64,000 nucleotides of DNA from Adineta vaga (lineage: Eukaryota; Animalia; Rotifera): assembly GCA_021613535.1 (NCBI GenBank), contig CP075493.1, positions 9,734,001 through 9,798,000 of the forward strand. The letters are read 5' to 3'. The position numbers were made by a program, and so were the translations under genes. Every line of letters begins with the position of its first letter. The stretch's first letter is position 1. Shown piece by piece: positions 834 to 57,948 of the stretch. The notes below the pieces were generated by a model. It was not told where the DNA came from. It did no database searches and saw nothing but the letters and a program-made list of their open reading frames with translations.

Positions 834-2248
834 CTATGCTGAAGACATCATGTCTAGATATTGAACAAGACCATCTTTATATTGCCCAGCACCCTAAAAT
901 TAGAAAAACAAAATAGGGTAACTTATCGAGTTATTTTTCTAATCAAATTTCATGTCTGAATATTTCCTTCTAATATACTACATTACGATAGACTCAACGA
1001 ATGGAGTCATCTATCTTTCTATTTATGTAAAGTAAGAAAACTTATTCTTTACTTTATATTCAATCATTTCTGGTGGCCAATTTCTTACAGCACCCGCTAA
1101 ACGTTTGGCTGTCTCTGGTTCGTTTCTACAAACATCTTCCATTTTTGTCATATGTGTTTTAATTGTAAATAGAATTGTATTCGATTTTGGTAAGCGTCTT
1201 AATGTTTGTCGTTCAGTACGAAGATACATCAGTTCACCTGCTGTATCCTTCGTAATCAATCTTGAATCCTTTTCATCGATTGCTGTATGACAAAGTTCAT
1301 TGCCAATCTGTACTAAAGATCGATAGACAAATGATGATGTAGTATATGAAGATTAGAACATACATGTCCAATTCACACGTTGAACAGGATTTTCTACTTT
1401 AAGTTTGAGAAAATATCTGTCCATTGATGTTCGTAGTTTTTCTTGAAAAAATGGCACATGAGGCATATGAACTGATGCTAGTGGTAAGCCACATTTTGAT
1501 TTTGGTAACCATCCAGATGGAAAACAAACGGCTAATGCCTGTAAAATAAGAAGAAAAACTCTTTTTCGTTCATTTAATCATCGATTAAAATAAGAATATA
1601 AATACATTTGCATAATATGTTTCTTCATTAGCAGCTCGTTGCATAATTACAAGATCCTCTTGTACAAGTAATGAAGCTATTTCCAATGGATGTTTATGAT
1701 TTGCTTCTGTTAAATCAAATAGTTTTCCAGTAATAAGATTAGTTATTTGTGTTTTCGAATGATTTCTTTGAAACATATTTGGATATTGATATGGAAGATG
1801 TTCAATCAACATTTGTAAGGTTTCCATAGCACCAGCATATGCTTCATCTTTACATATAAATATGTCACTTCGACGATTACTATTCAATAATTTTTGTTTC
1901 AATATTAATTCTTCGCGATAATTTCGATCAATTTGTATCCATTCAAGAATATTCAAGGATTGAAGTCCTAGATTAATGAATAGAAATTTTACAAATAAAT
2001 CATTATATTACCCATTGTCATTTGAAATGGACCATCTCGAAATGGACGATACCTAATTATTGGCATTTTATCAGGCGATTGTTCTAGAATTTAATTACAT
2101 ATTTATCTGTTTTATTTCATTTCACGAAACAATTATTATTACCGAGATTGGCATTTGGATTAATGGAATCATTTGATTCAATTTTAAAGTATGAAAATAA
2201 GAAATAAATAACGACAACAATAATCGTTACATACACAAGAGCAATCAT
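834..2248 (-). CDS. DUF3445 / heme-dependent oxidative N-demethylase alpha-subunit-like protein with N-terminal membrane anchor (multi-exon)
   Basis: Spliced translation contains YRPFRDGPFQMTMGL, EWIQIDRNY, LLVQEDLVIM, AVCFPSGW, SVHMPHVP, PVQRVNWT and LRTERQTLRRLPKSNTILFTIKTH, all recalled DUF3445 motifs. Start MIALVYVTIIVVVIYFLF. Confidence 0.85.
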
Positions 2249-2600
2249 TGTGATAACAAAGTTATAATTTTAACTTTCAAATGTACTTTCTTAATATAAC
2301 ATCATCGTAACTTGTAAGATATATCAGTAGAAGAATGAGAAGAAAAAAAGAAATAAACATAATTTGTTTCTTTTTAGATAACAATGATTCACTGAGATGA
2401 GTATATTACGTCTTTATGTTACAAAATAGAAGATATCAACTAAAGAGAAAATATCCGTTTTGAGCACATCTTACAAGTTACAAACTGTATTATGTATGCA
2501 TGAAGTGATAATATTTTTTTTATTTTCGCAAAAAAAATACATTGAAAATTGAAAAGTAAATTGAAATAAAATGGACGGATAGAAAATGTTATTTTTCATT

Positions 2601-4306
2601 CTAAAATAAATGTGAATATGTACGTTTCTTATCAGTAGGATTTTGTTTTTGTGCAATACGTCTTGATCGATCTTGTTCTCGATTTGATTTTAATTTTTGA
2701 TTAATAATATATTCTGATTCTTGTCCACATTCTGTCATACGTAAATCAAGATATAATAATGTATTATTTTCTTGTAAATTTTCTTGCAATGATTTGCCAC
2801 TATCACTACCTAAACGATTAGCACTAATATCAATTTTAATGAGTGTTTCATTTTGACGAAGAATTTCAGCTAATTTTGTTCCAGTTTGTTCGGAAAGATT
2901 ATTTGAAGATAAATTGACTTCACGTAATGATTGATTGATAGATAGCGCTAAACAAATAGCACGACCACCATCATCACCAATACGATTTAATCGAATATTT
3001 AAATAATCAATTGTATTGGATTTAGTTATACCATAAGCAATTGCTTGTGCACCTGAAACAAGTTATTATCATTTCTAATCTACGATTTTGACATATTTTT
3101 TACCTTCAAGACCAATAAGATTGTTACATAAATTCAATCGAACTAGTTTTGAATGTCCATTAAGTAATTTGGCAATAGCTCGACAGCCACCTATATATAA
3201 AATGATGACATTAATCTGTTTGAAAATGAAAGTTTTCTTTGCTTTACGTACGATCACCAATTTGATTATGTTCAAGATTAAGTTCTTGTAAGGTTGGATG
3301 ATCAAGTAAACTGTCTCTTACTAACATACGTATTTTAAGATCATCAACTTTACTTCGATGTAAATGTAAAACACGTAATGTTTTACATTGTTGAACAGCT
3401 TTAGCTAATATTTGACAATCTTTCTTTGTAAATTCAAACATTGTCCATTCAAAATTCATTCCACAACCTTTGACACCATAGACAACATGAAATTCTTCAA
3501 GATTTGGTAAACGTTTAATTAATTGAGTAAAATCAAAATGATCACTTAATGGTTTCTTTATTTCGGCATCAGGATCATTCGGAGATTCATTCTCTTCATC
3601 ATCATCAAAATATTCATCATCATTGTGAAGTATTCGATCTTGTATTTCAACTGGTGGTAACAATTGTTTTATATCAAGTCTTTTGACATATTGAGCACCT
3701 GAAAAACAAATTTTGACAAAACAAAATAAATCATTGAACAACTCACATACCAAGATCAACATAATCAAATAATTTTTTCATATCATCTCTACCAGGTACA
3801 AAATTTTCAACAACCTCTTCAATATTTTTCTCAAAATAGAATCGTTTCCATGAATTATCATATTCCTTAATATCAACCACTCGCCATTTTTCCTTACAAC
3901 ATTTTTCCCAATAACTTTCATCTTCAATTATTGGTGCTGTGACTTTAAGTGGAATATTAGTTGATAAACTTTTTAATAATTGATCTCGATGTTTATCTAA
4001 TAATTCATCATATTTAGGATTTGTATCAAAACTTTTTACTAGTGAATTTAATGCTAAATCTGTTAATGCAGGAACGATACGTAAACTCCATTCCAGATCA
4101 TCAGCGATAATTCGACGAACAGGTTTTAATTCAGGGTTAACCATTGAATACTGAACTTCATTTTGAGCAGCTTCTTCGATTGGATTAGGTATATTTTCAC
4201 TGGTTGCTGCAGAAAGTTCAACCGTATCTGTTGTTGTTGCTCCTGCTGGTGCAACTGCAGTCTCAACAGATGCTGATATTACTGGAGTAGAAACCTCTTC
4301 AGACAT
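2601..4306 (-). CDS. TCTE1: Dynein regulatory complex subunit 5 (TCTE1/DRC5), LRR protein
   Basis: RRIIADDLEWSLRIVPALTDL..., YWEKCCKEKW and YGVKGCGMNFEW match TCTE1, followed by RNI-type LRRs. Three introns. Confidence 0.92.
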
Positions 4307-4431
4307 CTAAAAATACATAGTATAAGTAATAACAGAAACAAATTTACACATCATAACAATAATAATAATAATAAGACTATTGCGCACAAAATAAAGAGAC
4401 AAAAAAAAGTAATACAATTAAGTAATTTATT

Positions 4432-6022
4432 CTAATCATCATCGACTGGTGGCAACCAAAATATCTGAAAGAAAAATATATCCATTTGCTGTTTAAAAAT
4501 AATTCTATGCAAACCATATTATTCGATGCTGTTGCCAACATAAATGATTTCGGATTGAATTGCACTGTTTGAATAGAATCTGAACTATTATCAGTAGTTA
4601 ATGTGGTCAGTTTTTCACCATCAGCAGTGCGCCAGACATGAACACGACCATCTGTTGAACCTAGAAAAATAAATTTCAAAAATATGAAATCATGTTTTGT
4701 CTGCAGTTAAATATATGATAAAATTTTGATGACGAAGAAAGAACTTCAACTCATTATAAATCTACATCACAAAAGTTTATTCTTAAGAGAGCTATTGATG
4801 TAATCAAATGAAATCGTACTATATTTTATTAAGATGAATGATACATACCACAAAATACATATTTCGAATCAGGACTAAAGGAAGCTTCTAATGAAATATT
4901 TTTTGTATTTTGATGTCCCTTGAAATAAAAATAAATGGCATTGTACATTAAATGATTAGAAAAATGTTTTAATTCATTACAGTAAATGTATGTAGAAGTA
5001 CTCCACTGAATGCATCAACAAGTAATATTAATGAAGTGTTTGTAGAAACGAGAATCATTTTTCCATTAGGACTAAATTTTAAATGAGTCCATTCAAAATC
5101 ACCTTCACATTCATATTTTAACATTTCAAAAGGTCCCTGTAAACAAAAAAACAGTTTTTTTTATTCAACATAGAATCACGAAAATCGAGAAGTAATCTTT
5201 CTACTTTTTCATGATTCCGAATATCATATAATCCAATAATTTGTGAATCAATTCCAACACCAAATGCTAATCCATCTGGATCATAATCTACCACTGGATT
5301 TCCTGGTGTTATGATCAAGCCCTATTTCAATTGATAATGATTAACTCAACATATGGTATGTTTTCGTAGTTATTTACTTGACAAAGTGCACTTCGTAAGT
5401 CCCATAGACGTACAGTTCGATCAGCTGATGCTGAAAGAAATGATTTATCAATTGGTGAAACAGCTAGACTTCGTACTCTATAATAAACATCGTTATTATT
5501 CAATATAAATGAATATTCTTTTAAAGGTCGTACTTTTTCGTATGTCCTGTATAATAACGAATATATTTACTATCTGACAATGATAGATATCGAATACTAT
5601 CTACAAGAAAAAATAAAATAAAGAAGACAAATTCGACAACAAGTTTTATCTTACCATCAACTTTCATTGAACAATGAAGTGCTTGTTCACCACTTCGTGT
5701 GAATCGTATCATATCACAACCATATTTTTTACTTGGAATTGGTCGTTTTGGTCTAAACTTAGCCTTTAATGAAAATTTTCATTAGAAAAAATATATTCTT
5801 ACAATCCAGCTTCACAATCATATACAACAATTGTATCATCATCTGAACTCGATATGAGCAAATCACCTACATAAAAAAAGAGAACTCACCAAAATGAACA
5901 ATATTAAAATGTAAAATTAACCAACCGTTTTTATTGAAATCACATGCATTTATTCGTTCAGTATTCTCACGAAAAACTTTTGTCATACGAAATGATTTCA
6001 CATTCGTATCATTAATCAACAT
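4432..6022 (-). CDS. WDR82: WD repeat protein 82 (SET1/COMPASS, PTW/PP1 subunit); a short upstream coding exon near 6108-6123 is possible
   Basis: SFRMTKVFRENTERIN, SSSDDDTIVVYDC, SKKYGVDMIRFT, IRYLSLSDSKYIRYYTGH, and C-terminal FWLPPVDDD-stop. Confidence 0.93.
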
Positions 6023-6309
6023 TTCTTGATTTGATTTGATTGAAGAAACAGGCAGAAATGTCTTTCACACAACTTCCAATCTTTTGTTGCTAGGGATGTG
6101 TTTTACCATCATGACTTGCGACATCTTTCGATAGATTATTGTATTGGTTTTCATTAATAACGATATCAATAATTTCCATTGTTCTTTTGACCACTTAATT
6201 CGTACAATTCTATAAACAAAAATTATTCTCAACTTAATTTTCTTATTCAAACGAGCCTATTTATAATCCTATGTAAAGTAACAATTTCAATGACAACGCC
6301 ATTGTGCTT

Positions 6310-6319
6310 CTGATTGGTC
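6310..6319 (-). promoter_or_regulatory. CCAAT box (GACCAATCAG) upstream of the WDR82-DRC5-DUF3445 cluster
   Basis: ctgattggtc on + is an NF-Y-type motif a few hundred bp upstream of the WDR82 ATG. Confidence 0.35.
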
Positions 6320-6428
6320 AATGCTGAGCATGCTGTCGTGCATTATCAGTTATCAACTTTCGTTGTGAAATATTTTTTTCTGCTAATCTATACAGAACAA
6401 TTTTAAAAGAACGGCATCTAATTATTTC

Positions 6429-6645
6429 AGGGTGTGTGGGTAGGAGTCAAAAATATATACTCCCATCCACACCTCCCAACTCTGAACAATAAACACATTT
6501 TTTGGTCCCAATGTTGAAAAAACTTCTATATAATGAACACATGTGAAATGAAGTAATGCGCACGAATGAAACAATCGAGGATAATAAAAAAGGGTGAGAA
6601 TGTGAGTGTAGTATATCTTTTGACTCCGACCCCCACCGACACCCT
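6429..6645. mobile_element. MITE-like non-autonomous DNA transposon (~217 bp) with imperfect terminal inverted repeats
   Basis: Left end AGGGTGTGTGGGTAGGAGTCAAAAATATATAC versus reverse complement of right end AGGGTGTCGGTGGGGGTCGGAGTCAAAAGATATAC. The ends are GC-rich in an AT-rich background, and no convincing gene lies inside. No target-site duplication seen. Confidence 0.6.
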
Positions 6646-8870
6646 CAAGATACACCTACAACACTCAAAATTCCATCAATTATCATACAAAAAAGACTAT
6701 CATACTCGATTCAACGCATCCAACAGTTCATCCACCTTATCAGGAAAATGACTGATTGGATCATAATATTTCGATCTCATTTCGTCATCTCTTGTTGCTT
6801 CCAACCGATACAGATCATTGCCATTTCCAACATCTAAATCAAACAACAAAAGACATTTCGATTTGCATCTCGGAATGATCCATCTCATCACATACCAATC
6901 CATCGTTTTAGTTTGTCATACATAAATGATAAGATATGTTGATCATGTTTTGCTTGCATTTTGCTTGCATCTCTCACCACACGAAAACTCTCATTGATAA
7001 TTGTCAGAAACATACTCATACAAATGAATACGACAATGACGATGAAGAGACTGAAACAAAATGGACCAAGAAATGCTGCTGCACCACTCAATTCCTGTAC
7101 ATCAAATTTCATCAATGTCATTTCGAATAACATTTGTGTAGTGTGTAACACACTTGCACAAGTCGATAGTTTGGAAACAAACAAGAGATAGAAGAGAATG
7201 ACGAATGCCATGAATACAATGGTAAACATGCATCCGAACGAGAGAAGTTCATTGGCAGCATATCGAAGTGTTCGTGCAAATAACATGAGACGATGATTGA
7301 AACGACACAGTTTTACGAACTTGATCGTTGCAAAGAAACATGAAAATGCGAGTAAATATGTGAAGAGATCATTGATATAGACAGCTAATTGAAGATTCAT
7401 AAAAACATATCCATTGGTTTGTTCGAATAGTTGACCGATGCGAAGTGATTCACGATATCGCCAGATGTAAATGGCAACATTTGTCCATGAACAAACAATG
7501 ATGCCAACATTGATGAATGACCAGAATTGACAAAAGTATTTCAGTTTCAGTTTCATCACCGATTTCACTTCTCCAATCATCATATGAACAATGAACATCA
7601 TGTAGAAGATGGTACAAATCAATTGCGACAATGATCTGAACACTAAAGAGAAGAGAAACGAGCATGTGAGGAAGACTACACGAAACTCGTAAACATATCC
7701 ATCACTATTGTATGTATGATGATTGCCAATTGTGAGATATGTATCTAGTTGATCACTTGTTTGATAGTGAAATGCTTGTTGAATGGATGAACTAAATGAT
7801 TTCGTCGATGTTTGATTGTTTGAGTGAAGATAAGGAATCCATCCTGGTTGAAATAATTGTTTTTCTTGATCGGAGAAACTATAGTCATGAGTACAGTGAG
7901 TGAAGAGATGTTGCATGGATGAGAATGATTTGAAGTGACATGAATGTGATTGAATTCTAAGTTGTCTCATTGTAATCCATCCAATTAATCGATTAGATTT
8001 GTCATTGATGAAACCAGAGAGATTTCTAGGTAGATCTCCATTGTACCATTGTTGTGCACGAATATTGTCAATAAAACTCGTTTCTAACCAATTCCAATAC
8101 TGATCGATAGTTGAAATCTAAACAATGAAGCTTTGTCTTTTCTTTGGAGTAGTGATGGAAGAGGAGGGTTGACTCACCTTTGTATAATCATTGTTGATCT
8201 GTTTGGTGTTGTGAAAGAATTGTCGAAGATGATGAACTTGATAGAATGCATGTTGATTACTGTTGGAATAGGTGATGACAAAGAGAAGAGCAAGAAAGGT
8301 GAACTAAGTATCGAATGTAAGCAAGTTCAGTTTGATCCAAACGATGAGGTCGAGTTTTGGATCGATGGAGAAATGGTGAATCATTGTTGAGTTGAGGATG
8401 ATCTTCGTCGATGAACTCGGCTGCTTCTTGATCTTTGTCTGTATTTCGAATGAAGAAGGCAAAGATGATTATCACTGCTATTCAGTGATCGTTTAATCAC
8501 TTGATGATCGTCACCTAAAGAACAATACAGAGAATCGTTCTTGTCAATAAAAAGATCGTAACATTTTCCACCAGTGTATAATGTGGAAATATTGATTGAT
8601 TGATTAAATGTCCATGTAGCCACACCATAATTATTATTATCTACATAGATAGTACCATCATCAGTGGCAGACAGACTCACTGGATAAGTATTGTTCCTAA
8701 CAGCGAGTGTTGTTGGAACTGAAGAGTCGTTAAACCATACTTGAACCAGACTAAGTTGTTGGTTAGCAACGTAGGCGATGTTATTGTTGTTTATGAAAAT
8801 ACCATAAGGGTATGTGCCAACTGTATTGTTGTCTGCAAAAGTGATTGCTGTTGTAGCTGAAAATAGGAAA
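6646..8870 (-). pseudogene. NHL-repeat/polycystin-channel (PKD1L-type) pseudogene with multiple internal deletions
   Basis: An NHL/beta-propeller segment (AITFADNNTVGTYPYGIFIN...CYDLFIDKNDSLYCS) is joined out of frame at ~8470 to TM/polycystin segments (YSNSNQHAFYQVHHLRQFF, RLIGWITMRQLRI, GYVYEFR, LCRFNHRL, LGPFCFSLFIVIVVFICMSMFLTIINESF). There is a frameshift at ~8310, a missing segment at ~7680, and the last exon is cut at the MITE. Confidence 0.75.
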
Positions 8871-10023
8871 CATCCTTCACAATCATTTAAGAACGTGTTA
8901 AACCAGATATGCCAGAAAGTCAAGTTGAACAATGCGTTTTTATTTGGTCGCATGGACAACAACTAGCACTAAATACGATTTGCTCTTGTATCGCATCTAT
9001 ACGAGTTTCTCTTCAGTATTAATCCTATCTTACCTGCATTTGTTTCTATTACTAGTTCGATGATATTGCCAATGGTAACTTTATTGTTCACTGCTCATTT
9101 GCAAAGAAGTTTCATAACGTGAAATAAAAGAATACTTCAAAGCCATGATTATCCTGTCCTTACTGTCCGACAAATATTAATCTGTACTTAAATGATTTAC
9201 CTTTCTTTCCATTGATGATCAATAGAATAAACGTCCACAAACCTAAGCTATTCATGGATAGCATCCTTTCGAGGATATCTTTTAGTTATAGTATTGATCA
9301 GTAGGACGTTGAAATGTTTTTACTAGTATTTGCAACCGATTCTAATAGAGAAAAGTCTACAAATGACAACTGCATGTTTGTATTAGAATTTTTTCTTTAT
9401 GTTTAGTTTTATTCGGAATCGACGGTATAAACATCAATGTAAATAAATGGTCTATAGTCAGTTCTTTTTGTTCCAAACAATTCATATAATAAACCATCTG
9501 GAATGGTAACCTACACTTTCCGGAAATTACTAGTTAAGTTTTCGAAGAATAAATATTGATTTTTTCTTTAGATTGTAAAAAGACAATAAAAATATGTTTG
9601 TTTTCGTCTACACGATCTCTGTCAATTTTGACTAAACGTCTACTCTATCTTGCATGTTCAAATGGAGCCTACATGATCTGAGGTTACCTGTCATATAAAT
9701 ATCATACTAGAATTCGCGAATTATGAATACATGATGTATAGCGACGTCTACTATTGATCTATATTATTGGTAGGAAAGTTTATATATGTATAAGGACAGA
9801 ATTTAATTTCTACCTACATGAACATGAAGTGAAACGAAATGAGGTGTAATAATCATCGTTTTGTTTTTATAAACTTCTTGTATTTGTCTATTGTTACGCA
9901 AATCTTTGATTTCTTGTAGCTTTTTAAGCAATTTAGTATGTTAGTCTACGTTTTACTTTTTTCTTAATCAAGTAAACCGCAAAAATTGACTTGATTTTTC
10001 TTATTCTAGATAAAAACTTAAGA

Positions 10024-11246
10024 ATGACTTGGAATTCAGCTTGTAGTATTGCATCCGATGATGAGAGTTCTCGACATAGTTTTCTATCCGATTGTGATTC
10101 AGAATTTGATCTAAAACCACCACCACGATATCCAGCAGAAAAACGATCATATTCTACATCAAATAAAAATACGATCACTCGTCTTGAACCACCTTTAACA
10201 AGATCAAGAGCAAAGGCACTAGAAAAATCCATGAATTTAACACAACTATTACCACAACAAAAACGTCAATCAACATTACGACGTAGTATTGATACATTTA
10301 CTGGAATGGCATCAACATTAACGAATAGTTTAAATAATACATCGATTCTGTTTCCAAAACAAGAATCATCCAATGAACGGTTAGTTACTTGATAAAAAAA
10401 TATATCAAAAATAAAACAAAGATTCGATCATGTTTTTATTTTAAGAATATCAACTTCGCCATTGGATGGTGTTAATATATTAGCTGATCGATTCGAAAGT
10501 TGTAGTTTAGATGAAGGAAGATGTAAGAATTTTATTTTTCTTTCAAATAAAAATAATGTCAATATTTATTTTAATTAGTAAACAAAAATTGTCTTTGGCC
10601 AAGTCGAGAAACGAATAGTCATTATCAACGTCCTATAAATCCATCACTTTCCAATCAGATGTTTGGTACGAATTCAATTTCTCCGCTAAATAATTCCCCA
10701 TTATTTGCTCAATCATCATCACCTCTATTCGGTCAACAACAACAAGCTCAATTATGGTCTCGCTTTCGTTATGCTGCTTCAACTCTTCGTGATCACATGT
10801 CCATTGAACAAACTAATTCAAATCTTCAACAAGTTCCTTCGAATATCTTCACATCTAATCATAATTATCTATTTAATCTCAATGATCAATCTACTATGTT
10901 ATTACCTGCACAAACAGTACCAACTCGTTTATTAACATTCCCCAATCGTTCTCTATCATCATCATTGCAACCTCCAACCGAAGAATTATCATCTTCTCTC
11001 TTCAGACAACGCAAAACTACATCCACAACAGATCCGATACCATCTACACGTACAGAAGATGTTACTGTTCGTCAAATATCTTCATCCAAAGTCTTCTTTA
11101 CATTAACCATATTCATCATTGGTCTTACACTTGGTTATTTGTTAACAAATACACTACCACCGAGTATTGTTTGGACATTATGTATGAAATATTTGCATTA
11201 CTTATATATTTACCTTCAAGCTATATTGAATTACTTTACTAGTTAA
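10024..11246 (+). CDS. Uncharacterised S/T/Q-rich protein with C-terminal hydrophobic (membrane) segment; 3 exons
   Basis: ORFs 9991-10392 and 10659-11246 can be linked through GT-AG introns (~10380-10445, ~10523-10577). C-terminal VFFTLTIFIIGLTLGYLL. No family recognised. Confidence 0.7.
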
Positions 11247-11583
11247 TTATTGTCATATATAATTACTTTGTTGTTTTCTTTTTCTTTTTGTTAAGTTTAA
11301 TTTACGTACAGTGATATGTAATTGTTGTTGTTGTTGTTGTTGTTATTATTGTTCTTTCCTTTTCATTGTTGTAGTATCATCAGTTTTAAATAAAAATATG
11401 ATTTTGAAATTGTGATAACAAATTTTAAAAAAACACCGAATATTTTCTTAAATTAATCAATTCGATTGAAATACATGAATATGAATAAAGAGAAAGAAGA
11501 AGAAGAAGAAGAAGAAGAATAGAAAAAAAGTAATTGTATATTTTATTCCAGAAAGCAAAAGAATAGATGTGATAAGTAGATGT

Positions 11584-13278
11584 TTAGGAATGTTTTTTAT
11601 TCTCTGTTTCAGAAGTATTAGCTGGTATATGAGATGATTTTCGTAGAGATTGATGTGTTGTAGCAGCACCATCTGTTGTTTCGATTTCATCACAATCATG
11701 TAATAATTCAAGACTTTTAATATATCGATGTGAAAAAACATCTATTGAATATTTAATTCAATGAATTCAATTTTAGAAAAACATTCTCTTACCTATGTAA
11801 AAAGACGCACCATTGTAAACACTAACAGCAAATATTGAACAAAGAAAAACAACATTTACATACCTAGAAGAAAGAACAATTTAAAAAGAAAAGGAATATG
11901 TTACAAATGTTTACTTACATATTTCGATAATACCATAGACAAACTGGTAAAATTGATAATAACATATAAGCAAATTGTAAAAAGAAATAAAACACAACTT
12001 TATATCGATTGATTCCATCATTGGATCCATCAAAACCAAATTTTTGTATAAGACGTGAAACAAAACCATCCTTATCTGCTAATAACCATGTATATGATGT
12101 TGCTCGTAAACCTCGTGCAACTTTATCACGACGTCCATAAATAATAAAGGCATAATACAATACTTGCCATATTAGATAGAAAATAACTGTATAGAAAACA
12201 GCAGTTTTTGTATGAAGCGATGAACCAATATGAACAATAGCTGGATAATGTTCCCGTTGAAGTTCAATTGGTAAAAGCCAACGAATTGTAAACAATGTTA
12301 ATGGTGGATACCTATTCATCAGATAGAAACGTTACGAATCAAAATTGAATAAATTTATTTACATATGAATAAATAAGCTTGTAACTTTGTCAAGACCTAT
12401 GCAAATATGATTATTTAGTCTATATAGATATGATTATAAATTATATATCTTACTATGAAAAACGAGTGAATTTCTCCAAAGAACTATTGCAAAACCTAAT
12501 GGTCCATGGCTTAATGTATAACAAACAGTAAAAAGAATTTTTGATGATGGAAATATCCACAAATAGAGTAGAGTTAAAAGATTAACAAAATAGCATAGAT
12601 CATAGACTGAAAAAAAACAAGAAAATGAATTTTTGCTTTTTCAATGAAAATATATAATGTTCAATTTACCAAAATAATGCCAACTTTTACGTTTATAGAT
12701 AAGAAATCGAAGTGTAATCAAAAATAAAGCTTGATAGGTGTAAACAAGTGGTAAAATATGTGGCCAACGGCCAGCTAGAATAATCAATAATAAGTGATTG
12801 TCGAAAAGAAATTCGGTTCTTTATACCAATTAATGGTGAAAAACAAGCATTCGCAACTCCAATGGAAAATGAAATTTTATCTCGTGTTCGAATAAAACTT
12901 GGTTTTTTTATATTTTCCGACCATTTATGAATACGTTGTTGTAATTGAGTCTTTAAAAGACGCTTTTGTGCTTCAAGTTCATCAATAGTTCGTCGTAAAC
13001 GTTGCCGAGAATCTTCTCGCCGTTCTTCAACTAATTTATCAATAGATTTAGTTTTGCTATTGAAATGAAATTTTCGTTAGATTCTTACTTTGAGTTGTTA
13101 TATTATCAATTCTATCAGAAACAACTTCAAGAAAATCGTAAAAATCAAGTTCTTCTTCATCGTCATTGAGATTTTCATCACTACTATTTTCTGCAGTCAA
13201 AATTCCATTAATTGAATCTCGTCGTATTTCTTCATCACTTGAATTTTTTTCATCTTTTAATATATTCTCGTCAGTCAT
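11584..13278 (-). CDS. GPC1: Glycerophosphocholine acyltransferase (GPCAT, Gpc1/DUF2838 family), multi-exon
   Basis: RDKISFSIGVAN, RFLIYKRKSWHYF, YDLCYFVNLL, SHGPLGFAIVLWRNSLVFH, LDKVTSLFIH, YPPL, RATSYTWL and YNGASFYIDVF. Confidence 0.88.
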
Positions 13279-13362
13279 ATCTAGAATAAATATATACATC
13301 TGACTTTTTGAAATATTCACTTAAATTTTTAAATAGTATCGAATGCTAATTCTTAAATGCAT

Positions 13363-15052
13363 TTATGTCCACCAGAAATTTACAGAAAAACTAGGTGAAA
13401 GAGACCGAACATAATGCCAATGACGAGCAGGCATGTAAAGCATATCACCAGGTTGAAGAATAAATTCAACATACGGAACATCTTTAAATAGAGGAAATCG
13501 ATCGTAATCAGGATTTTCAACATCAATCTAAATAAAACTACAATTTGATAAATAGTCATTCCGTTGGATGAACTTACGGAACTCGTATTGTTTAACATAG
13601 AAGAACCAAGCGCATACAATCTTGAAGAATAAATTGGATCATATAAACGAATGTATTTTTCTCCAACGATCTAAATGAAGACAATTTTGTTCAATTACAT
13701 TCATTTGTTTTATATCATTACTTGAGCAAGAAGATTTTGTTTAGGATCATTATGTAACGGAGAAATAGTTTGCTTTGGACCAATCCATCTAAAATTAACA
13801 TTTATAATAGAACATTGTCTCGTATTACAAATGATCAACATACGCATTGAGATCAACTTCTTCATCTTCATTTTCATTTTCATGTAAACTTATGTAACAA
13901 TAATCGGGTATGCAAATATCTTTTTTCAAATCAGGAATCTATAGAATAAAATAAATAGATTATACATACAAACAAACAAATGTCTTCTTCTTTACTTGAT
14001 CTAATAAAGGATGTTGAGCTAAATAACCACGTTTTGATGACTTTAAGAAATTCGACATTAACATAGATATATCTACGTAAATAATACGACTTACTCTTTG
14101 TTTGCAATATTGATTGACAAAATCAGCAATTGTCATTAATTTCTGTGTCCAATCATCATCTGAATAACGACTACCTAATTCAATTGGTACTGTTCGATCA
14201 CCAGCTGATTTAATTAGATATTCAAAACTATAAAATCAATATTAAATGAAAATATCAAACAAATATGATCTTACCTCCATTTTTTCATTGCTGGCCAATG
14301 ATCAATACATCCGGTAAGAATCACAGGTTTCTTTGTTTGCATATAACACGTAAGAAATTGTTCTATCGATGGACAGTGAATACGTTTAATATCTTTTCTT
14401 GGATCAAGAATTGGAATTGACATCCAATTGAAATTCTTCTCTTCCTCCTCCTCCTCATCACCATCATCATTATCGAGACGGATTCGTTTTGACGTAAACA
14501 AATCCACATCCTAAAAGTAATCGAATTTCATTACAAAATAAGCGCAATGTAAAAAAGATCAATCTAACTACTGATTCTTCTTTTCTGAGATTTTCATTAA
14601 TAATATCAATTAATTCATTAAATTGTTTTTCAAGTATTGGTCCTCCAAGTAAAATTCCTAGATCACATTTCTTCACAATATCCTACTAAAAAGAAATACA
14701 ATCAATAATTCAATCGAATGATATGATACTATACATTTACTTGATAATTATCATGTAGTATTACTGTACAATCAGCAAGAACATCAATATAACAAGCATA
14801 TGCATATAAATATCGATATGCTGGTTTAACATTCTGCCATATCCCAGTATTTAATTTCTCCCATGAATATTCTAGAACAATTTTGATATAAAGTTTGATT
14901 TTTTCTATTTGTTGTTTTGAAGATAATAAATTTCGAGCTGTTTGTAAATAATTTACTAAACATAAATCAATTTGATCTTTTGTAAAATCTTCATCGAAAA
15001 CATTCAATTGTAGATGTCCGATTATGTGTTGAATATTCGTATGAAAATTCAT
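13363..15052 (-). CDS. KDM8: JmjC domain protein JMJD5/KDM8
   Basis: SWEKLNTGIWQNV, CDLGILLGGPI, KPVILTGCIDHWPAMKKW, RTVPIELGSRYSDDDWTQ, GYLAQHPL, TISPLHNDP (HxD) and HWHYVRSLSPSFSVNFWW. Confidence 0.93.
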
Positions 15053-15179
15053 CTATAAAAACAATGCATAATCAAAGAAAGAGAGTTTACGGCTAATTTT
15101 TGACTAAAAGAAAACGAAAAGAAACAAAAAAGAGGACTTTGCTAGATTGAAAAATATATAAATAAATCAATGAATTATT

Positions 15180-17861
<2,682 letters not shown>

Positions 17862-17900
17862 TTGATGTTATCAAAACAATTTAATCTAAAATAGATTTGA

Positions 17901-18902
17901 TTAGTGAAAAAAATCTTGTAACTTTTTTTGGCAAAATTCAATCTTATTCTTATCAAAAATTAAATCACAAGTTTGTAACATCAATTGATAAATATCTTCT
18001 TTAGTTAAATGAAATGTTTGAACTAAATCGAAGATTTCCGATGATAAACAACAATTCATTAAACCACTGTCATCTGTACAGATTGCTAAAGGATGTTTAT
18101 TTGTATAGAACAAATTAAAATGATGTTCTGTTAAATCAGATAAATTCATTGTTAATGAATTTGATGTTGGACATAATTCCAAAGGAATTCGTTCTTTAAT
18201 AACACGTTCTTCTTGATCATTTGTACGAAAATTAAAGTGACCAAGACGTGTAGGTTTATAATCAAGTATAAGATTATTTTCATGTGAACATTCTTTATCA
18301 GGTAATTCACCGATATGAATAGTTGTTGATAAATTCATTTTTTTAGCTAAATCAAAAACTGGAAGAAAACGTTCGAAAGATTTTATATTCGGATCACCGG
18401 ATAAATCAAGACCAACTACATATGGGCGATACGTTTCAGCTAGTTTCAAAGTTTCCATAGCTTGTTCAACAGTTTGTGTTCGATCAATACTTAAGATTAA
18501 TCGTGAACAAATTTTCTCTTCATAACCTTTCATAATCTCTAAAATTGCCTCGATATAATTCGATGATGAAATCGTTCCATTATTAAAGGAACGAGGGCGT
18601 GTACGTAATTCAACATACATGATGTGATCATCAATAAAATCTTCCAATGTTTCACGTGTAATACGACGAATATCGTCTAAATTTGTTACACATGAACGAA
18701 GTAAAGCAAATTTTTCGAAAACATTTGCCATTCTTGCATGCGTATCACCCGAATGAAAGTCTTTGTCCAATGTATCCAAACGAAGTTGATCCGTTGATGA
18801 CGAAAGTAATTGACGAAATGTTGATGAACGAATACATCCATTGAGATGTGCATGAAGTTCAATTTTAGGAATTAATTGACAGAAACGACGCAGATCGTCC
18901 AT
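17901..18902 (-). CDS. ADAL: Adenosine deaminase-like protein (ADAL/MAPDA, N6-mAMP deaminase), intronless; in-frame ATG also at 18932
   Basis: PKIELHAHLNG, YVELRTRP, RLILSIDR, VVGLDLSGDP, TIHIGE, RLGH, LELCPTSN and ICTDDSG. Confidence 0.92.
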   Translation of the reverse strand: MDDLRRFCQLIPKIELHAHLNGCIRSSTFRQLLSSSTDQLRLDTLDKDFHSGDTHARMANVFEKFALLRSCVTNLDDIRRITRETLEDFIDDHIMYVELRTRPRSFNNGTISSSNYIEAILEIMKGYEEKICSRLILSIDRTQTVEQAMETLKLAETYRPYVVGLDLSGDPNIKSFERFLPVFDLAKKMNLSTTIHIGELPDKECSHENNLILDYKPTRLGHFNFRTNDQEERVIKERIPLELCPTSNSLTMNLSDLTEHHFNLFYTNKHPLAICTDDSGLMNCCLSSEIFDLVQTFHLTKEDIYQLMLQTCDLIFDKNKIEFCQKKLQDFFH

Positions 18903-19183
18903 TTTCGCGGTGTGAAAACTTCCAAATAACATTAGATAGATTTTATTCTACAGACACTTATGACGCTACTTTCAACGAATGAAAAGAACTTGCTAGTAGC
19001 GCTATGAATGCGTCACTTATTATACAGATGGAGCAACAACTCAGAGCTGATGAAATACAAAGAAGAAGCCAATTGAAAGATGATTCGAAATTAATCATTA
19101 TAAATTTTTTTACTTAGTTATGATGATCATTGAAATATAAGTATTTTCTTTTGCATTATTCCAAAGTATCGTTTACCTTGTTA

Positions 19184-33135: not shown

Positions 33136-33162
33136 TATATATATATATATATATATATATAA
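33136..33162. repeat. (TA)n microsatellite
   Basis: Direct read of the sequence. Other short simple repeats: (GA)n ~31516-31534, (GAA)n ~11496-11518 and (TTG)n ~11323-11345. Confidence 0.85.
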
Positions 33163-48783: not shown

Positions 48784-48828
48784 AAGAATAAAAACAAATG
48801 TTTGTTGAAAATGATAGATGTTATCTAT

Positions 48829-49269: not shown

Positions 49270-49377
49270 GTTTGTGACTATGTGTTTGTCAAAGAGATGA
49301 ATATATAAATGAGATAAGATATCAGCTTACTTTTTTCTTTTTCTTTTCAATAGGAACATTATAAAAATGATGTTATT

Positions 49378-51117: not shown

Positions 51118-53109
51118 AATTAATGATTTAATTGTTTGATTCGTTGTTGTTCAAAGTGAGGTGATCGTATTCTAATAATAATTTACGCGTGTGTAACTCA
51201 TCTACTGTCGAGGGAGCATTTTTATGGCAATTATGAGAGACGAATGAATGAAAGCAATAGAACTGAACAGTTCCTTCTTCCTTTTTCTCCCTCTCTCTTA
51301 CACGCTCTCTCTCTCGGTCTCTCTCTTTGCTCGTGTCGAAGAGAAAAAGAAAAGGAAGAAACGGATGATGACGAAAAAATGACTAGATCAACATGAATAC
51401 ATAAACAAAAGTAAATTGAAACATAAAGAATAAAAGACAGATAGACAGATATATAGAGATTTAATATGATCAATTGTTTCAGCATATGAAATAATGTATG
51501 AACATAAGATATTTTTAATCGTTTTTTTTTGTTTTCTTCTCTTCTTTTTTTTGTTGCAAATCTTTTTTTGTACATGTCCTTGAGTACCGTAAATCTTATA
51601 TTATTTCCTATTGAATATTTTCCAAATGACATGCTTGTCAATCATTATAGCTATTGTTCGTTAACCCGAAGGAAAAGCTTACAGTCAGTGTATATCATAT
51701 GATTAAAGGATATCACAAAAACGCCTCGCCTTGAAGCGACGAAAAGTAGGAGAAAAAAGGGAGAGAAAGAGGAAGAAGTCAATGCAATTTATTTGTCCAT
51801 GATTTCAATATTGACATGAATGAGAATGATTGACTTGGTTTTTTATTATTCTTAGACGAGTCAATCAATCTGAAAAGTCCTTCTAAGATTCTTCAGTTTC
51901 TTCGTTGATAGTTAGCTCCTACTGGTCTCTTATTCACCCCAGGGGTATGCTCTCTGACCACAGGGTGGTACATGATTGCATCATTGTATTACTGCTTTGT
52001 CTTGATTCTTTTCTTCATGATGATGATGTCAAAGTTGTATCTCGCTTGCACCATTTTTTCTTTCTTGTTCGAAATTTTGTCGATCTATTGGAAAAAGCGA
52101 GAATGAATACATATCTCACAAAATAGATTAATTGTCAAGCGGAAACGGATGCATAGTATCTCGCTTGAATTCTAATTAGTTTATATCTGTGATTAGAACT
52201 GGTCAAAAATAACAACAAGGATGTATGTTTGAGTAATTTTATTGATTTTAGTATTTGCTTATTGACCTTGAATATGATCGACAAAAAAAAGAATCATATT
52301 GAACAAGTCAGTGTTATATGATTAAGATTTCTATTCAATATTTTCTCTGAGAGTGAACGGATGCCTCTCCTCTTGATCGATAGGATGTTCAATGATGAAA
52401 AAAAAAGAAGAAGAAAATCATGTGTGATTATAATGAATGTCGAAAAGGAAAAAAGAATCTATGAAACAAAGAGAAAGAAAGCCGAGAAAAAAAGAATGAA
52501 AGAAAACGATAATTGGCATTTTCTTTTTCTCATTATATTGAAAAGCCCCAAGGGAATTTTGCTTGAATCTTCTAATCATTTGTATGCTAAACTATGACCC
52601 TGTAAATTGCTCATTCTAATATGTTACGATGACAAAAAGAAAGATCTTCTACATCGAAATCCTTTCTTTAGTTTACAAAAGATCATGTCAAGAATATGAT
52701 GAGGTCGGAAATCGAACAGTTGGATGTTTTAATGTCTGCTAATGAACACATCTAATAGAATCAGCAATTGTATTACAGACGGCTGCACGAGTATGGACAA
52801 TGTGTTACATGGAGAGTGAAGTTTTGTGAATAAATCATTCACGAATAAAATACAATGATTGCGTTCAGATAGATCTGTTATTCATCTTGATAGTATAAAT
52901 GGATGATGATTTAATCTTTGCAGATCTATTTTCTTGTCTCGAGCTTTCCTAACGAATATTTACCATCGGATATCATTGTTTATGTTTACAATATGAAATT
53001 CAATCATAATTCATATATCCAACTAATATATTTTTATGGAATGCAGTCAAATAAATAAAAAAAAATCAATAATTCTTCTTATTAATTATTTCTTTCTTTG
53101 CTCACAACT

Positions 53110-53986
53110 TCAGTTAGATTGAAACGTCTTCCAAACTTCTTCCAAATCTATTTCTTCAAAATTCTTCACTGTTCGCCATGTTCCGTACTCTTCCAATGTT
53201 TCCTTCTTTGCTGATGTTAATATCCCAATACATTTTATTTGAGCCGTCACTGCAGCACGAACGCCTGCTATTGAATCTTCGAAAACGACACAAGCATTTT
53301 TATTAATATTCAAACGTTGAGTTAGTTCGAGATACATTTCTGGATTTGGTTTACCTTTTTTTGTGTTAAAAAGACAAACTCAAAAACTGATTTGAATGAT
53401 GTGATAGAGAAAGAAAACATACCAATTCCAAATTCTTCAGCAATAACAACAGCATCAAAAAATGTTTTTATATCAATTTTCAATAGATTCAATTCAAATT
53501 CTGTTACTTTTCGAGTTGCATTCGTTGCTAATCCTAATCATATAGAAAAAAAAATCGATTTCAATCATTATTGATTTCGTATGTTTACCAATTTTTAATT
53601 TTGATCGATTTTCTTGAATATAAGCAATAATTGTTTCTAAACCCTTGGTCGGTTGAAGGTTTTCTTGTGCTAATTGATAAAATAACAAATCTTTTTTCTC
53701 TCCTACATCTTTTCGTTTATCGTCGGATACATCTGGTAATAATGCACGCGTTATATCATCATTAAATCGACCTATATATGTATATAAATAAAGAAATCCA
53801 ATGATTCATCAATAATCTCTCTCTCTATCTCTATTTGCTTTTACCTGAAATATTTTTATCATAAAATTCTCTATCAATTTCTTGTTGATGAGTATTAATA
53901 TCAGCAAGAATTTTCTGCCAAGCTTGAAAGTGTATTGAATCGGAATCAGCTAATGTTCCATCGAGATCAAAGAGAATTCCGTACAT
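53110..53986 (-). CDS. HAD-superfamily phosphatase, CbbY/beta-PGM type, resembling plant Sgpp and bacterial homologues
   Basis: ILFDLDGTLADSDSIHFQAW, FYDKNISGRFNDDITRALLP, GLATNA, GKPNPEMY and VVFEDSIAGVRAAVTA. Three introns. Confidence 0.88.
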
Positions 53987-54108
53987 TATTTTGCTATTTT
54001 CTAGAAAAATTTCTTTATTTAAAATATAATAAATACTTTAATAAATATCATTCTATTCGTTTACAAAATACAAGAAAGTGAAAGGTTGGAGGGATATTTA
54101 TGTCATTC

Positions 54109-56533
54109 TTAGGTGGTGCTTGTTTTGAAACGCATTGCGTGTCGAACAGTTTTCATCAGAAGTAAATTAAGATCTGGTGTTGGTAAGACATTTTCATGTG
54201 GTAAAGCCATACGACGAGGAAAAAATATGTAATCAAGCTATATATAAGAGAGAAATAGTGGTAAACGTTGTAAAAACAAAGATCTTACGGGATAATTGAG
54301 AAAATTACAAACATTGGATGTGTAAATATCGGCAAAACGTGCTAAACGCCGATGAAAATAAGTCGGAACAGTATGGTACGGAAAATAGAACCGAAATAAG
54401 GATTGAGAAGATCACGAGATTTTGCTCTGGAAAATATAAATACGAAATATTATAAATCAGATAGAACAGTTTACCTTTCTTCTTCTTGTTCAGCTACCCA
54501 AGTTTTCATAACAAGATCTGCTTCTGAGCCGGGAATAACCTTGAATTAAAATTGAAATTTCGAGTTAAGTTCAACATAATCAATTATGGATTCTAATAAT
54601 CTTACTTGTAATTTATCGATAAGCCATTGAAGAACAGTTAACTAATAGAATCAATTTTAGTTTTATATATGAATCAATATAATCTTTACCCATCGTATTG
54701 TTTTTTGAAATGCATCTGAATTCATAATATTGATCTCATCCTTGTAGGAAAAAACAAGTCAATTATATATGTTCAATCGATATGAAACTACCTTACTTCA
54801 ACTTCTTCAAGAATCGCACCTGTTCTCCATCCATATTTGAGAAATAAATCCTAGAATATACAAATTTAATCATATTCATCATTATTCAAATAACAAATAA
54901 ACTTACTGCTAAATCACCATAGATATGATCACCAATATAGAGAACATCATTTCCTTGCCAATGTTTCATTTCTATTAAAGTCGTTAGATTACCCTGTAAA
55001 CAAAATCAAATCTGTAGAATACATTTCTTTCAAAAGAAAAAAAACATGAATAATTTACTTCAACATAAACTTTCCCATGTTCTATTTTCAGTACTCGATC
55101 CCATGATTTTGATTTTTTGCTTACATCAATTTCACGAAATGGTCTAAAAACATCAAAATGAACGTCAATTCAATACTTTATTCACTTCAAACCTTTTCTG
55201 TTCGGCAAAAAATGAAGGTTTCCGTGCTTGACATATAATTACATCGAAAAAATTTTGCCAATTATCTCCGAGCAAATAACTCATTCCAAGATTGACATAC
55301 CAGTAAGCACTATTAGTAATTAGGAAGATTTGTTTATTTGCATCATGAAGACGTTGTAAAAATGGTTTTAAACGAGGATTCTCTTCAAAATACATCTCTA
55401 TGAAAAGATTAGAATCCTATGTATGAAAATGAATATCTACTATTGATGAACTTACCGACGTTTTCTCCAACTTGACGATGCATCATTCCACTTTTATGAA
55501 ATGCACTAACTGCTTCCTAATAAATGAAATTGATAATTTTATATTTTCATTCAGATTATAACTTACTCGAACATCATAATGTACATATTCCGAAGCAAAT
55601 GGAATACTATTATCAATAAAATACTGAAGAAAACAAAAGGATTTTAGTGGAAGAAAAATCTAAAGATTTATTTATATTTATCTACTTGAGTAACATCACG
55701 TAGAAGTGTTATTTCAGAAATTGAAAATATATCAACATATTGAAACATATTCGATGTTCGTCCTAGATAACCCACAACGTCAACCGAGAGTTTCGTACCA
55801 TGATGTGCAGCAAGAACTTCTTCATCTGGTACGGCACGCATACCCCTATTACATGAATGAATAGTATTCAATTGAATTATTTGAAAACTATAAAGATTAC
55901 TTACTGATAAACAGTTCCTAATTGAATATTATGATAACTATCAACTTTCATTAACCAGCCACGTTTGATATCTAAATGTAAACCACGTGCACCCATGCCT
56001 GGTCGATAGCAGAAGTTCATAATATCATCAGGATACTATATAGAAAGAATAGATCTTGTTTCTATTAAGAAAGATTGTTTATTATAATTCTTACTCGTAA
56101 AGTTTTAACGAGAAATGTCTTTGCATTGTCATAAATTAATGAATGTAATGTTGATTTATAACGTGCTAAAGTATAATCTAAATAGAAGAACATTTATGTA
56201 TTCATGTCTAGTAGATGTATGAAAAAAGAATAACGAACCAAAATCAAAACCATATACTTTAATGTTTTGTAGATCTAATTCATTATTCGAAAAGATTCCA
56301 TTTGGATTGACTTTTTTCGAATAGGGATATGTTGAAGCTAATTACAAAGATGAAATATATATTCAAGAATAAAATAAAATAAATAATTATTTACAAAACG
56401 CTTCATGCTTTAATAACTCATAAAGTTGTTTTAATTCTTCTAATTGACGTGCTGCTTGTGTGATTGATCGACGAGGTGAAGTAAAGATTTCGGAGATAAA
56501 ACGATAATAATATTGTTTTCGACTGTTCAACAT
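54109..56533 (-). CDS. 5'-nucleotidase domain-containing protein (NT5DC2/3 class); apparent 1-nt frameshift at ~54376
   Basis: IFSNNELDL, YGFDYTLARY, RGLHLDIKRGWLMKVDS, FLITNS, FDVIICQARKPSFF, LYIGDHIYGDL, GWRTGAI and NPYFGSIFRT. Mitochondrial-like presequence. Confidence 0.88.
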
Positions 56534-56830
56534 CGTAGAAAATATGTACACAACTGAGATTCATAAATATTATGTTATATATTCTGTTTCTGTACGATTC
56601 TTAGTTTTAACAATGTTACATGACTGCTGCTGAGTTAATACAACCAGTTCGCGTGCTGATCAACAGAGGTCTATAGAAGGCAAGTCTGATTAGAGTAAGT
56701 TACAGAGAAAGAAAAATAGGACGTGAAAAACTTTTATTAATGGTTCAGTCTCAGCATGTCTGATTTGTAATAGCAAATATTGATAAAATTTCCGTTTTAT
56801 AACTGATTTCCGATGTACATCGGTACAAAT

Positions 56831-57948
56831 TTATCTATTTGCATAAGCATACAATAATGTTTTTGATCGTCTTAAGATTGATTCATTTTCCATTACAACA
56901 ATTAAATCTTGAGTATTTCCTCGGACAATTCGAATTGGTTTGATCTTTTGTTCATTATCTGTTGTTTTCTGTCGTTTCAAACGACTTTCACGTAGAACAA
57001 GACATGCTGTTTCATCTGCTTCTCGTTGTCGTAAGTCCTCTAGTAAAGATAATCGATGATCACGTGGTGTTTGAATACATTTTTGTTCTCCATTATGTAC
57101 ATTCGTCGTTAATTCAACTTGTCGCTGATGAAATCGATCTATATTTAAATTTCGATTGGATTCTCCAGTTTGTGCTTTATTTAATTCGACTAAAAAACGA
57201 ATTTGTTCACGAACATTACTAGTCATTTCGTAGATATTTGAATTGAATAGACGTGTATCAAGTCGATGTTGAGCAAAGAAGTGAAGACGTCGAATGATAT
57301 ATGTGAGAAATGCATATAATGTTTGAAGAAAGACATGTTCACCACATTGACTTAAATGAAAATTCTTTCGTGCAAAACGATTAATTAATTTTTGTTGATA
57401 AATATTTGCATCTGGTCGAATATAAGGAACTAAGTCTTTTTGACACGATGAAGTAAGATCGATTAATTGAGGACATGATGGTGGAAGACGAAAATGAGCT
57501 TGTTGTAAAGATGGAAGTCGTGTTGAATCGGATGAATTAGAAATAACATTCTCAATACGAAAAAACACTCGTATGGTTTACTGATGCGTAAAAAAATGCT
57601 TACCGATGATGATGACGTTTGTAATGGAATTGATTTGAAGATTTCCCATGAATATGGATCATATTGATTTTGTTGAAGATATTGATGTGCTAATGGAATT
57701 GTTTCAACAAGAAAGAGAGTTAAACTATGTTTAATAGTCACATTTAGAATCTGTTGAACATTTTGAACAAATGTTTCGATAGTATATGATGTATTAAAAA
57801 GATGACGGACACATTCTTCAACATTCACGGTTAGATCATCATTTGTCTGTGTCGATGAACGTCCTTGATTAGGTTCACCTAATTTGATCAAACGTATTAA
57901 TCTCTCTCGAAGTTTTGAGATTGATTCAAGATGATGTACAGTCTCCAT
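56831..57948 (-). CDS. TAF4: Compact, divergent TFIID subunit TAF4 (TAFH domain plus histone-fold/C-terminal domain), one intron 57552-57603
   Basis: TAFH-like LIRLIKLG...NVEECVRHLFNTSYTIETFVQNVQQILN...LFLVETIPL. C-terminal YEMTSNVREQIRFL, LRQREADETA and RIVRGNTQDLIVVMENE..RRSKTLLYAY parallel TAF4. Confidence 0.75.

Follow-up and report, generated by a model that had tools for sequence, protein, structure and literature searches.

Gene Clusters in the Window

The window analyzed here, a stretch of 64,000 nucleotides from the genome of the bdelloid rotifer Adineta vaga (contig C1:9,734,001-9,798,000; assembly of 100.8 Mb in six contigs), contains three co-oriented minus-strand gene clusters that may well work as operon-like units: WD40>DRC5>DUF3445, ADAL>LETM1>JMJD5>GPC1, and TAF4>NT5DC>HAD. 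The window has a GC content of ~31%, encodes proteins with I4U23 locus tags, and lies in the gene-dense core at 9.7 Mb of an 18-Mb chromosome, not in a subtelomeric region. Gene identities derive from Pfam and PDB searches with individual exons, and exon models were built by eye and script; joined exon models were used for local BLAST and trees only, with database searches run exon by exon. The three clusters and their genes are as named in an earlier reading of the same DNA (the original prediction), which also gave 352, 84, and 122 bp for the spacers before the last genes, values that are exact on a script recount. A narrower label in that reading, WDR82 for the first gene of the first cluster, holds as far as WD40 repeats; domain searches reach the WD40 level only, and WDR82 specifically is not recovered.

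The ADAL>LETM1>JMJD5>GPC1 cluster begins with a single-exon adenosine deaminase-like gene (ADAL, 17901-18932), an ordinary gene that resembles ADAL/MAPDA of plants and animals and points away from a plus-strand gene whose start is at ~19285. A 39-bp spacer (17862-17900), with an acceptor-like ttttAG 15 nt past the ADAL stop, separates it from LETM1 (15179-17861; Pfam and PDB matches), which is followed after 126 bp (15053-15178) by JMJD5/KDM8 (13363-15052; Pfam and PDB matches, including the KDM8 N-terminal repeats), whose ATG stands directly after the AG at 15053-15054. After a further 84 bp (13279-13362), in which the acceptor AG occupies 13281-13282, the cluster ends with GPC1, a glycerophosphocholine acyltransferase gene (PF10998, DUF2838; 11584-13278) of 435 aa in eight exons. 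A plus-strand gene at 9976-11243 faces GPC1.

The first cluster opens with the WD40-repeat gene (~4432-6022, start approximate), then a 125-bp spacer (4307-4431) that has AATAAA at 4426-4431 and an AG at 4307-4308 abutting the next start codon, so that the DRC5 ATG is immediately preceded by an acceptor-like tttttAG. DRC5/TCTE1 (2601-4306) is a leucine-rich-repeat gene with the dynein regulatory complex subunit 5 as its best PDB match (E = 8e-32). From its stop to the ATG of the last gene there are 352 bp (2249-2600), and the DUF3445/HODM_asu-like gene (PF11927; 834-2248; Pfam match and gene model) encodes 344 aa in six exons; to its left lies a polycystin-1-like gene on the plus strand. In the third cluster, TAF4 (56831-57948) is head-to-head with ERO1 (plus strand, from 58325) and lies 297 bp upstream of an NT5DC-type 5'-nucleotidase gene (PF05761 by Pfam; 54109-56533). 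The 122-bp spacer after NT5DC (53987-54108) contains, counted back from the ATG of the last gene, AATAAA at ~30 nt and at 14 nt an acceptor-like tttttctAG; this last gene encodes a HAD-IA phosphatase of the beta-phosphoglucomutase/YqaB type (HAD; 53110-53986; 226 aa, four exons); a convergent 202-aa gene follows HAD in Rotaria socialis and Adineta ricciae. With an opposite-strand gene beyond each of them (for HAD as seen in other bdelloids), DUF3445, GPC1, and HAD indeed hold the last positions that the original prediction gave them.

The three terminal genes have short GT-AG introns (five in DUF3445, seven in GPC1, and three in HAD; 44-159 nt across the three genes) and a GC content at third codon positions (GC3) of 0.13-0.19, like that of their neighbors. 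Because of these bdelloid-type introns and host-like composition they must be old, if acquired at all. They are host DNA and not contamination, given the chromosome-scale contig, the metazoan neighbors, the host-type introns, and, for GPC1, spliced RNA. Short spacers are not peculiar to the foreign-like genes, since native pairs are also tightly spaced (39, 125, and 126 bp).

RNA Evidence at the ADAL>LETM1>JMJD5>GPC1 Cluster

RNA contigs of four runs from three studies were aligned to window positions 12001-18000, which cover the three junctions of this cluster. The contigs skip introns of 51-67 nt with GT..AG ends, and all four runs are therefore genuinely RNA; five GPC1 introns are confirmed by contig joints. 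The GPC1 contig of run X1 extends beyond position 13282 into nine loose letters which, on the minus strand, read CTTACCAAG. Joined to the genomic AG (13282-13281), they make up CTTACCAAGAG, which is the 3'-terminal 11 nt of the published rotifer spliced leader GGCTTATTACAACTTACCAAGAG (PMC3795323, Table 1). Because the loose end of the contig matches the 3' end of the leader, GPC1 mRNA is trans-spliced two bases 5' of its ATG. The expectation that a last gene of these clusters is trans-spliced thus holds for GPC1, with the leader end seen in the X1 contig, and for HAD extends to an acceptor-like AG; spliced-leader evidence in RNA is confined to GPC1, and DRC5, JMJD5, and LETM1 likewise have acceptor-like AGs in the sequence.

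About 59 spliced-leader RNA gene copies in the A. vaga genome match the leader at 22 or 21 of 23 letters (for example C1:2551160-2551336 and C5:9884356-9925969), against none for a reversed control. The exact 23-nt published leader is absent from the genome, the first base being T in the copies and G in the published sequence, and the genome holds one spliced-leader sequence family. Many of the copies are divergent inverted pairs 154 bp apart, and there are local arrays on C5, C2, and C6.

Two 3' ends are located by run X6. A loose end of 17 T at position 13280 is the poly(A) tail of JMJD5 on the minus strand, which starts at 13280/13281, at the acceptor AG of GPC1; another of the same length at 15052 is the poly(A) tail of LETM1, beginning at 15052/15053, where JMJD5 has its acceptor AG (15054-15053). 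The base following each acceptor AG is A, which makes the placement of both junctions ambiguous by one base. As the poly(A) tails of LETM1 and JMJD5 start at the acceptor of the next gene, the spacers of 126 and 84 bp are the 3' untranslated regions (UTRs) of the upstream genes in their entirety, and the intercistronic distance is zero. No AATAAA occurs within 30 nt of the poly(A) site in the 3' UTR of either JMJD5 or LETM1. The 3' UTR of ADAL would be 15 nt only, if this gene is polyadenylated at its ttttAG as at the other two junctions.

Conservation Among Bdelloids and in the Ohnologous Region

In Rotaria sp. Silwood1 the gene order is ADAL-LETM1>JMJD5>THOC3-like WD40>GPC1, followed by a convergent gene, and in Didymodactylos it is ADAL, a remnant of the last LETM1 exon, JMJD5, WD40, and GPC1. 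The acceptor and the motif AT ATG ACT GA at the start of GPC1 are conserved in Rotaria, where the spacer measures 86 bp. The THOC3-like WD40 gene that Rotaria and Didymodactylos carry between JMJD5 and GPC1 is not at that place in A. vaga; the WD40 gene of the window (4432-6022) was considered as its counterpart and rejected, as no similarity was found. NT5DC>HAD is retained in R. socialis (annotated gap 172 bp) and A. ricciae (154 bp), where an acceptor precedes the HAD start codon by 13 nt. What lies upstream of NT5DC varies between species, and TAF4 is absent from that place in R. socialis and A. ricciae.

Within the A. vaga genome, C4:2254184-2316980 is the collinear ohnologous counterpart of window positions 9976-56560. 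LETM1>GPC1 and NT5DC>HAD are kept there, JMJD5 and ADAL are lost, and TAF4 is missing; being unlinked to NT5DC in this region as well as in other bdelloids, TAF4 is not a conserved cluster member. Because they are kept in both ohnologous regions, the tail arrangements of GPC1 and HAD predate the bdelloid genome duplication. GPC1 and HAD thus remain behind the same partners in Rotaria, Didymodactylos, A. ricciae, and C4, with differing flanking genes. For the first cluster there is no counterpart in the ohnologous region, and DUF3445 of the window type is single-copy. An extra truncated HAD copy lies in the ohnologous region (C4:2307830-2308456, I4U23_017852). The GPC1 of the window shares 84-86% identity with a protein of Rotaria sp. 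Silwood1, yet groups in the tree apart from the A. ricciae protein P0259; two GPC1 ohnologue lineages older than the Adineta-Rotaria split would explain this grouping.

Public gene models fuse neighbors within these clusters (ADAL with LETM1, JMJD5 with WD40, and JMJD5 with GPC1 in A. ricciae P0257), giving predicted proteins of up to 1602 aa. Fusions of this kind are the type of error expected where operon-like spacing is ignored.

Operon-Like Units or Independent Genes

With a probability of roughly 0.55, these tight, co-oriented, and conserved clusters work as operon-like units of the Ciona/Oikopleura type in a compact trans-splicing genome. The pre-mRNA of a gene would then start upstream of its acceptor, within the transcription unit of the preceding gene; the spliced leader would be attached at an AG that directly precedes the start codon or lies up to 14 nt ahead of it; and the upstream mRNA would be polyadenylated at the same AG, leaving no intercistronic region. 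We infer that the genes of a unit would be co-transcribed from one upstream promoter.

Alternatively, although we consider it clearly less likely, the genes may be compact but independent units, each with its own promoter in the 3' part of its upstream neighbor, where the leader trims a 5' outron and tail positions are due to chance; the U-rich tract and AG would double as cleavage context, thereby placing poly(A) sites at acceptors. Several findings weigh against operon-like units and, in part, favor this account. The spliced-leader evidence comes down to nine letters from a single contig in a single run, and a leader is by itself no proof of an operon, because spliced leaders were reportedly found on 50-65% of bdelloid mRNAs by Pouchkina-Stantcheva and Tunnacliffe in 2005. 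No listed RNA contig in positions 12001-18000 spans two genes, and contigs cannot reveal transcript starts. Contig depth is several-fold different between neighbors, with LETM1 far above ADAL (in run X1: LETM1 53, JMJD5 9, GPC1 18, and ADAL ~0), and GPC1 is about twice as deep as JMJD5 in three studies (X1, X2, and X6); such differences are compatible with internal promoters and equally with mRNAs of unequal stability. DUF3445, outside the RNA-covered region, lies 352 bp from DRC5 without an AG acceptor directly at its ATG, and this spacer is long enough to harbor a promoter of its own. Independent units would also agree with the short spacers between native genes and with a tail pattern whose chance probability is a mere ~0.03-0.04, calculated post hoc. 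They are harder to reconcile with a spacer of 84 or 39 bp that is entirely upstream 3' UTR and leaves no room for an intergenic promoter, with gene order and acceptor placement that are conserved across bdelloid families and ohnologues while the flanks differ, and with an anatomy that is the same as that of accepted Ciona operons.

Nematodes, tunicates, flatworms, and chaetognaths have operons resolved by spliced leaders. For rotifers, operons are entered as "ND" (not determined) in the table of a 2008 survey (PMC2481426), and a 2025 paper names rotifers in passing among the lineages with both trans-splicing and operonic transcription (PMC12460157); full-text literature searches found no description of rotifer or Adineta operons. 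Operons of Ciona often have no intercistronic region, with a median poly(A)-acceptor distance of 1 bp, and the rare SL1-type operons of Caenorhabditis elegans are alike in this (PMC7986045). The A. vaga clusters resemble the operons of Ciona and the SL1 type in that the upstream poly(A) site abuts the downstream acceptor (intercistronic distance ~0-1 bp); with these and the operons of Oikopleura they share short co-oriented runs and one leader for operonic and other genes, and with Ciona and Oikopleura a tendency of gene predictors to merge neighbors. They differ from Ciona and the SL1 type in that neither mapped poly(A) site has a canonical AATAAA within 30 nt, that the last cistrons are non-metazoan-like, and that their operon-like status is suggested by RNA contigs, none of them bridging.

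The more familiar SL2-type operons of C. elegans are likewise co-oriented clusters of two to five genes in conserved order that are resolved by trans-splicing. Their own features are a dedicated SL2 leader and ~100 nt from poly(A) site to acceptor; A. vaga has a single leader type and a zero spacer at the two mapped junctions. Trypanosomatids are similar in that the upstream 3' end is coupled in position to the trans-splice site that follows, seemingly with no consensus poly(A) signal involved, and in that a foreign gene inside such a unit would need no promoter. The units of A. vaga differ in being short (two to five genes), in lying between ordinary divergent promoters, and in having cis-spliced introns; moreover, in trypanosomes the poly(A) site and the acceptor downstream of it are 100-300 nt apart and do not coincide.

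The operon-like RNA anatomy of a bdelloid-conserved cluster that ends in a fungal-type GPC1 is the strongest new result of this analysis. If this anatomy is general, bdelloid gene models need re-annotation, as neighbors are fused in several public annotations, and promoter and UTR analyses would change.

Origin of GPC1

PF10998 matches exons 3 and 4 of the window gene, and the protein is 33-45% identical over ~350-400 aa to UniRef entries bearing the name glycerophosphocholine acyltransferase 1 (GPCAT); the window gene is thus a member of the GPC1/GPCAT family and a predicted enzyme. An exhaustive profile search with exon 6 yields 112 representatives. For the word-index search, which included NCBI nr among the searched data, the query was the Didymodactylos orthologue (57% identical to the window model). 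Among its 120 best matches (at least 230 bits), every named match from outside the bdelloids is fungal, led by Endogonales (45% identity, E = 1e-100) and followed by Mortierellomycota and Basidiobolus, and down to 230 bits these 120 include no non-bdelloid animal and no monogonont rotifer. The best fungal score is 355 bits with the Didymodactylos query, and the window model itself scores 291 bits to Gongronella.

The bdelloid criteria for HGT (horizontal gene transfer) combine phylogeny with an HGT index hU of at least 30, the lead in bits of the best non-metazoan score over the best metazoan score outside rotifers, or an alien index (AI) of 45 or more. The hU of GPC1 is at least ~125, against the threshold of 30 used in the field for bdelloid HGT (PMC3499245). 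GPCAT is present in animals other than chordates and arthropods, where it forms its own clade (PMC5122774). Since other animals possess GPCAT and none of them is among the 120 best matches, bdelloid GPC1 is much closer to the fungal proteins than to those of other animals. In maximum-likelihood (ML) trees (LG+C20, quick search; no animal GPC1 sequences included), the bdelloid clade of a 73-row tree groups with Mucoromycota and Mortierellomycota (Shimodaira-Hasegawa-like approximate likelihood ratio test [SH-aLRT] support 82). In the tree of named rows the bdelloids fall on the side of Mucoromycota, Mortierellomycota, and Dikarya, across a split with SH-aLRT support of 94 from chytrids, Blastocladiomycota, Basidiobolus, and aphelids.

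GPC1 is therefore probably an anciently acquired gene of fungal type. A native origin would make GPC1 an ancestral opisthokont gene, HAD a fast-evolving HAD-IA protein, and DUF3445 an old family with patchy loss. In its favor, GPCAT occurs in non-chordate, non-arthropod animals, and these existing animal sequences (PMC5122774) are outside the tree sampling; forcing Fungi proper into one clade costs 17.7 log-likelihood units, with p = 0.072 in the approximately unbiased (AU) test, so that a position of the bdelloids outside Fungi is unrejected; the nearest non-bdelloid relatives of HAD are bacterial and merely 25-31% identical, leaving this gene without a close relative anywhere; and introns and a host-like composition are common to all three genes. 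These points weigh against foreign origin. We nevertheless regard native descent of the three genes as improbable, in view of 120 best GPC1 matches (at least 230 bits) whose named members are all bdelloid or fungal, the hU of at least ~125, the lack of monogonont orthologues of DUF3445, GPC1, or HAD among the relatives found in sequence searches, the named DUF3445 relatives that are all fungal or bacterial, and HAD scores 53 bits nearer to bacterial than to human PDB chains. GPC1, a phosphatidylcholine-remodeling enzyme, is a likely fungal acquisition common to all bdelloid families examined.

Origin of DUF3445

Matches of the DUF3445 gene to PF11927 score 95 and 154 bits, above the family cut-off of 25. 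The protein has an N-terminal hydrophobic helix, and the gene has five GT-AG introns of 44-159 nt. It scores 201 bits to a fungus, no animal match was seen, and all named relatives are fungal or bacterial. The window protein shares ~37% identity with fungal proteins as well as with the other bdelloid DUF3445 clade, and the actinobacterial members are 25-30% identical to it; in the tree it forms a long branch outside a clade of bdelloids plus Ascomycota (support 99) and outside the actinobacterial clade. DUF3445 is very probably foreign, from a fungal or bacterial family. No entry for DUF3445 or DUF2838 or for their Pfam accessions occurs in the supplementary tables of two papers on bdelloid HGT.

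An intronless paralogue (C5:16004866-16006017, P0001) has as named relatives only bdelloid proteins and those of Ascomycota, the latter at 50-53% identity. In A. ricciae and R. socialis a gene of this type lies beside other foreign-type genes and a transposase, with HPPK/pterin-binding and beta-lactamase genes as its neighbors in A. ricciae; foreign genes could form a small island here. Copies of the paralogue also occur on C2 and at C1:17.23 Mb, and models of Rotaria magnacalcarata fuse it to a PF05141 (DIT1/PvcA) domain.

Origin of HAD

The HAD model is identical to the annotated A. vaga protein I4U23_003141. TIGR02009, TIGR01509, and PF13419 match exons 1 and 4, and the four motifs of the superfamily are present (DLDGTL, LATNA, GKPNP, and FEDS for motifs I-IV); HAD is accordingly placed in HAD-IA, in the beta-phosphoglucomutase/YqaB subfamily, as a predicted phosphatase. 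A word search with the intron read-through frame L083:585-1019 as query recovers bdelloid relatives only, and a scan of metagenomes for a spliced HAD transcript copy returned nothing besides intron-bearing genomic contigs of other bdelloids. A bacterial donor was not found among 52 loci, all at most 31% identical over full length. The best PDB chains are Thermotoga TM_1254 (80 bits), an Entamoeba HAD protein, and bacterial beta-phosphoglucomutases, and the bacterial chains are 53 bits closer than human PUDP (27 bits); the nearest Atlas clusters are bacterial as well. This likeness in PDB and Atlas is suggestive only, and HAD is a bdelloid-specific, bacterial-like phosphatase whose foreign origin is somewhat doubtful. 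The supplementary tables of PMC3499245 do not contain the entry "haloacid dehalogenase." The claim that the last genes are non-metazoan-like thus stands by the usual similarity criterion for GPC1 and DUF3445, and is weak for HAD, where it comes from PDB matches only (80 vs. 27 bits).

Tail Position of Foreign Genes

Bdelloids are animals with unusually many acquired genes, and how a foreign open reading frame (ORF) is first expressed is a long-standing question. The original prediction proposed that promoterless foreign ORFs landing downstream of host transcription units are expressed by read-through and trans-splicing, and that they would be enriched genome-wide at cluster tails. All three clusters of the window end with a non-metazoan-like gene, two of these arrangements are older than the bdelloid genome duplication and the split of bdelloid families, and GPC1 is trans-spliced; the tail would also be the least disruptive spot for insertion in an operon. 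A related idea is published, namely that spliced-leader trans-splicing may ease the expression of transferred genes, with rotifers cited (PMC6053224).

As a general rule, this proposal appears unlikely. It draws on three cases only, picked after the pattern had been noticed, and the chance that all three foreign-like genes, one per cluster, stand last in clusters of three, four, and three (or two) genes is 1/36-1/24 (~0.03-0.04). The clearest HGT gene studied, the intronless DUF3445 paralogue, stands alone, with a divergent upstream neighbor 1.2-5 kb away in A. ricciae and R. socialis. The foreign origin of HAD is in some doubt, and TAF4 is no conserved member of its cluster. The published picture (PMC3499245) places foreign genes in subtelomeric regions. 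Furthermore, because all three genes are ancient, their present tail position need not be the landing site. The proposed route is plausible for GPC1 and HAD and weak for DUF3445, with its 352-bp spacer.

A narrower version, in which bdelloid rotifers have Ciona-type operons and GPC1, HAD, and perhaps DUF3445 were captured as last cistrons before the genome duplication, is tentatively put forward here. The upstream 3' end would be made at, and perhaps by, the next acceptor, without a canonical poly(A) signal, and the tail position would reflect how the foreign genes first came to be expressed. As far as searched, this operon-tail version of the HGT idea is unpublished, going beyond the general notion of PMC6053224. 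The terminal genes are like the described bdelloid HGT genes (Gladyshev 2008; Boschetti 2012; Flot 2013) in having a non-metazoan best match, linkage to metazoan genes, gained introns, and expression; the described genes are enriched in subtelomeric, transposon-rich regions, whereas the three of the window lie in the core and end conserved clusters. If the capture of last cistrons is true, operon tails would be a second, core-genome route by which foreign genes are fixed, beside the subtelomeric one. If the anatomy is general, the first expression of a promoterless foreign ORF is testable with existing RNA-seq and long-read data.

Other Features of the Window

A polycystin-2-like channel gene on the minus strand has a large exon at 6891-8117 with a GC3 of 0.35, compared with 0.07-0.19 in the other coding pieces measured. 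G-rich stretches occur at ~6450-6660, in the spacer between this gene and the WD40 gene.

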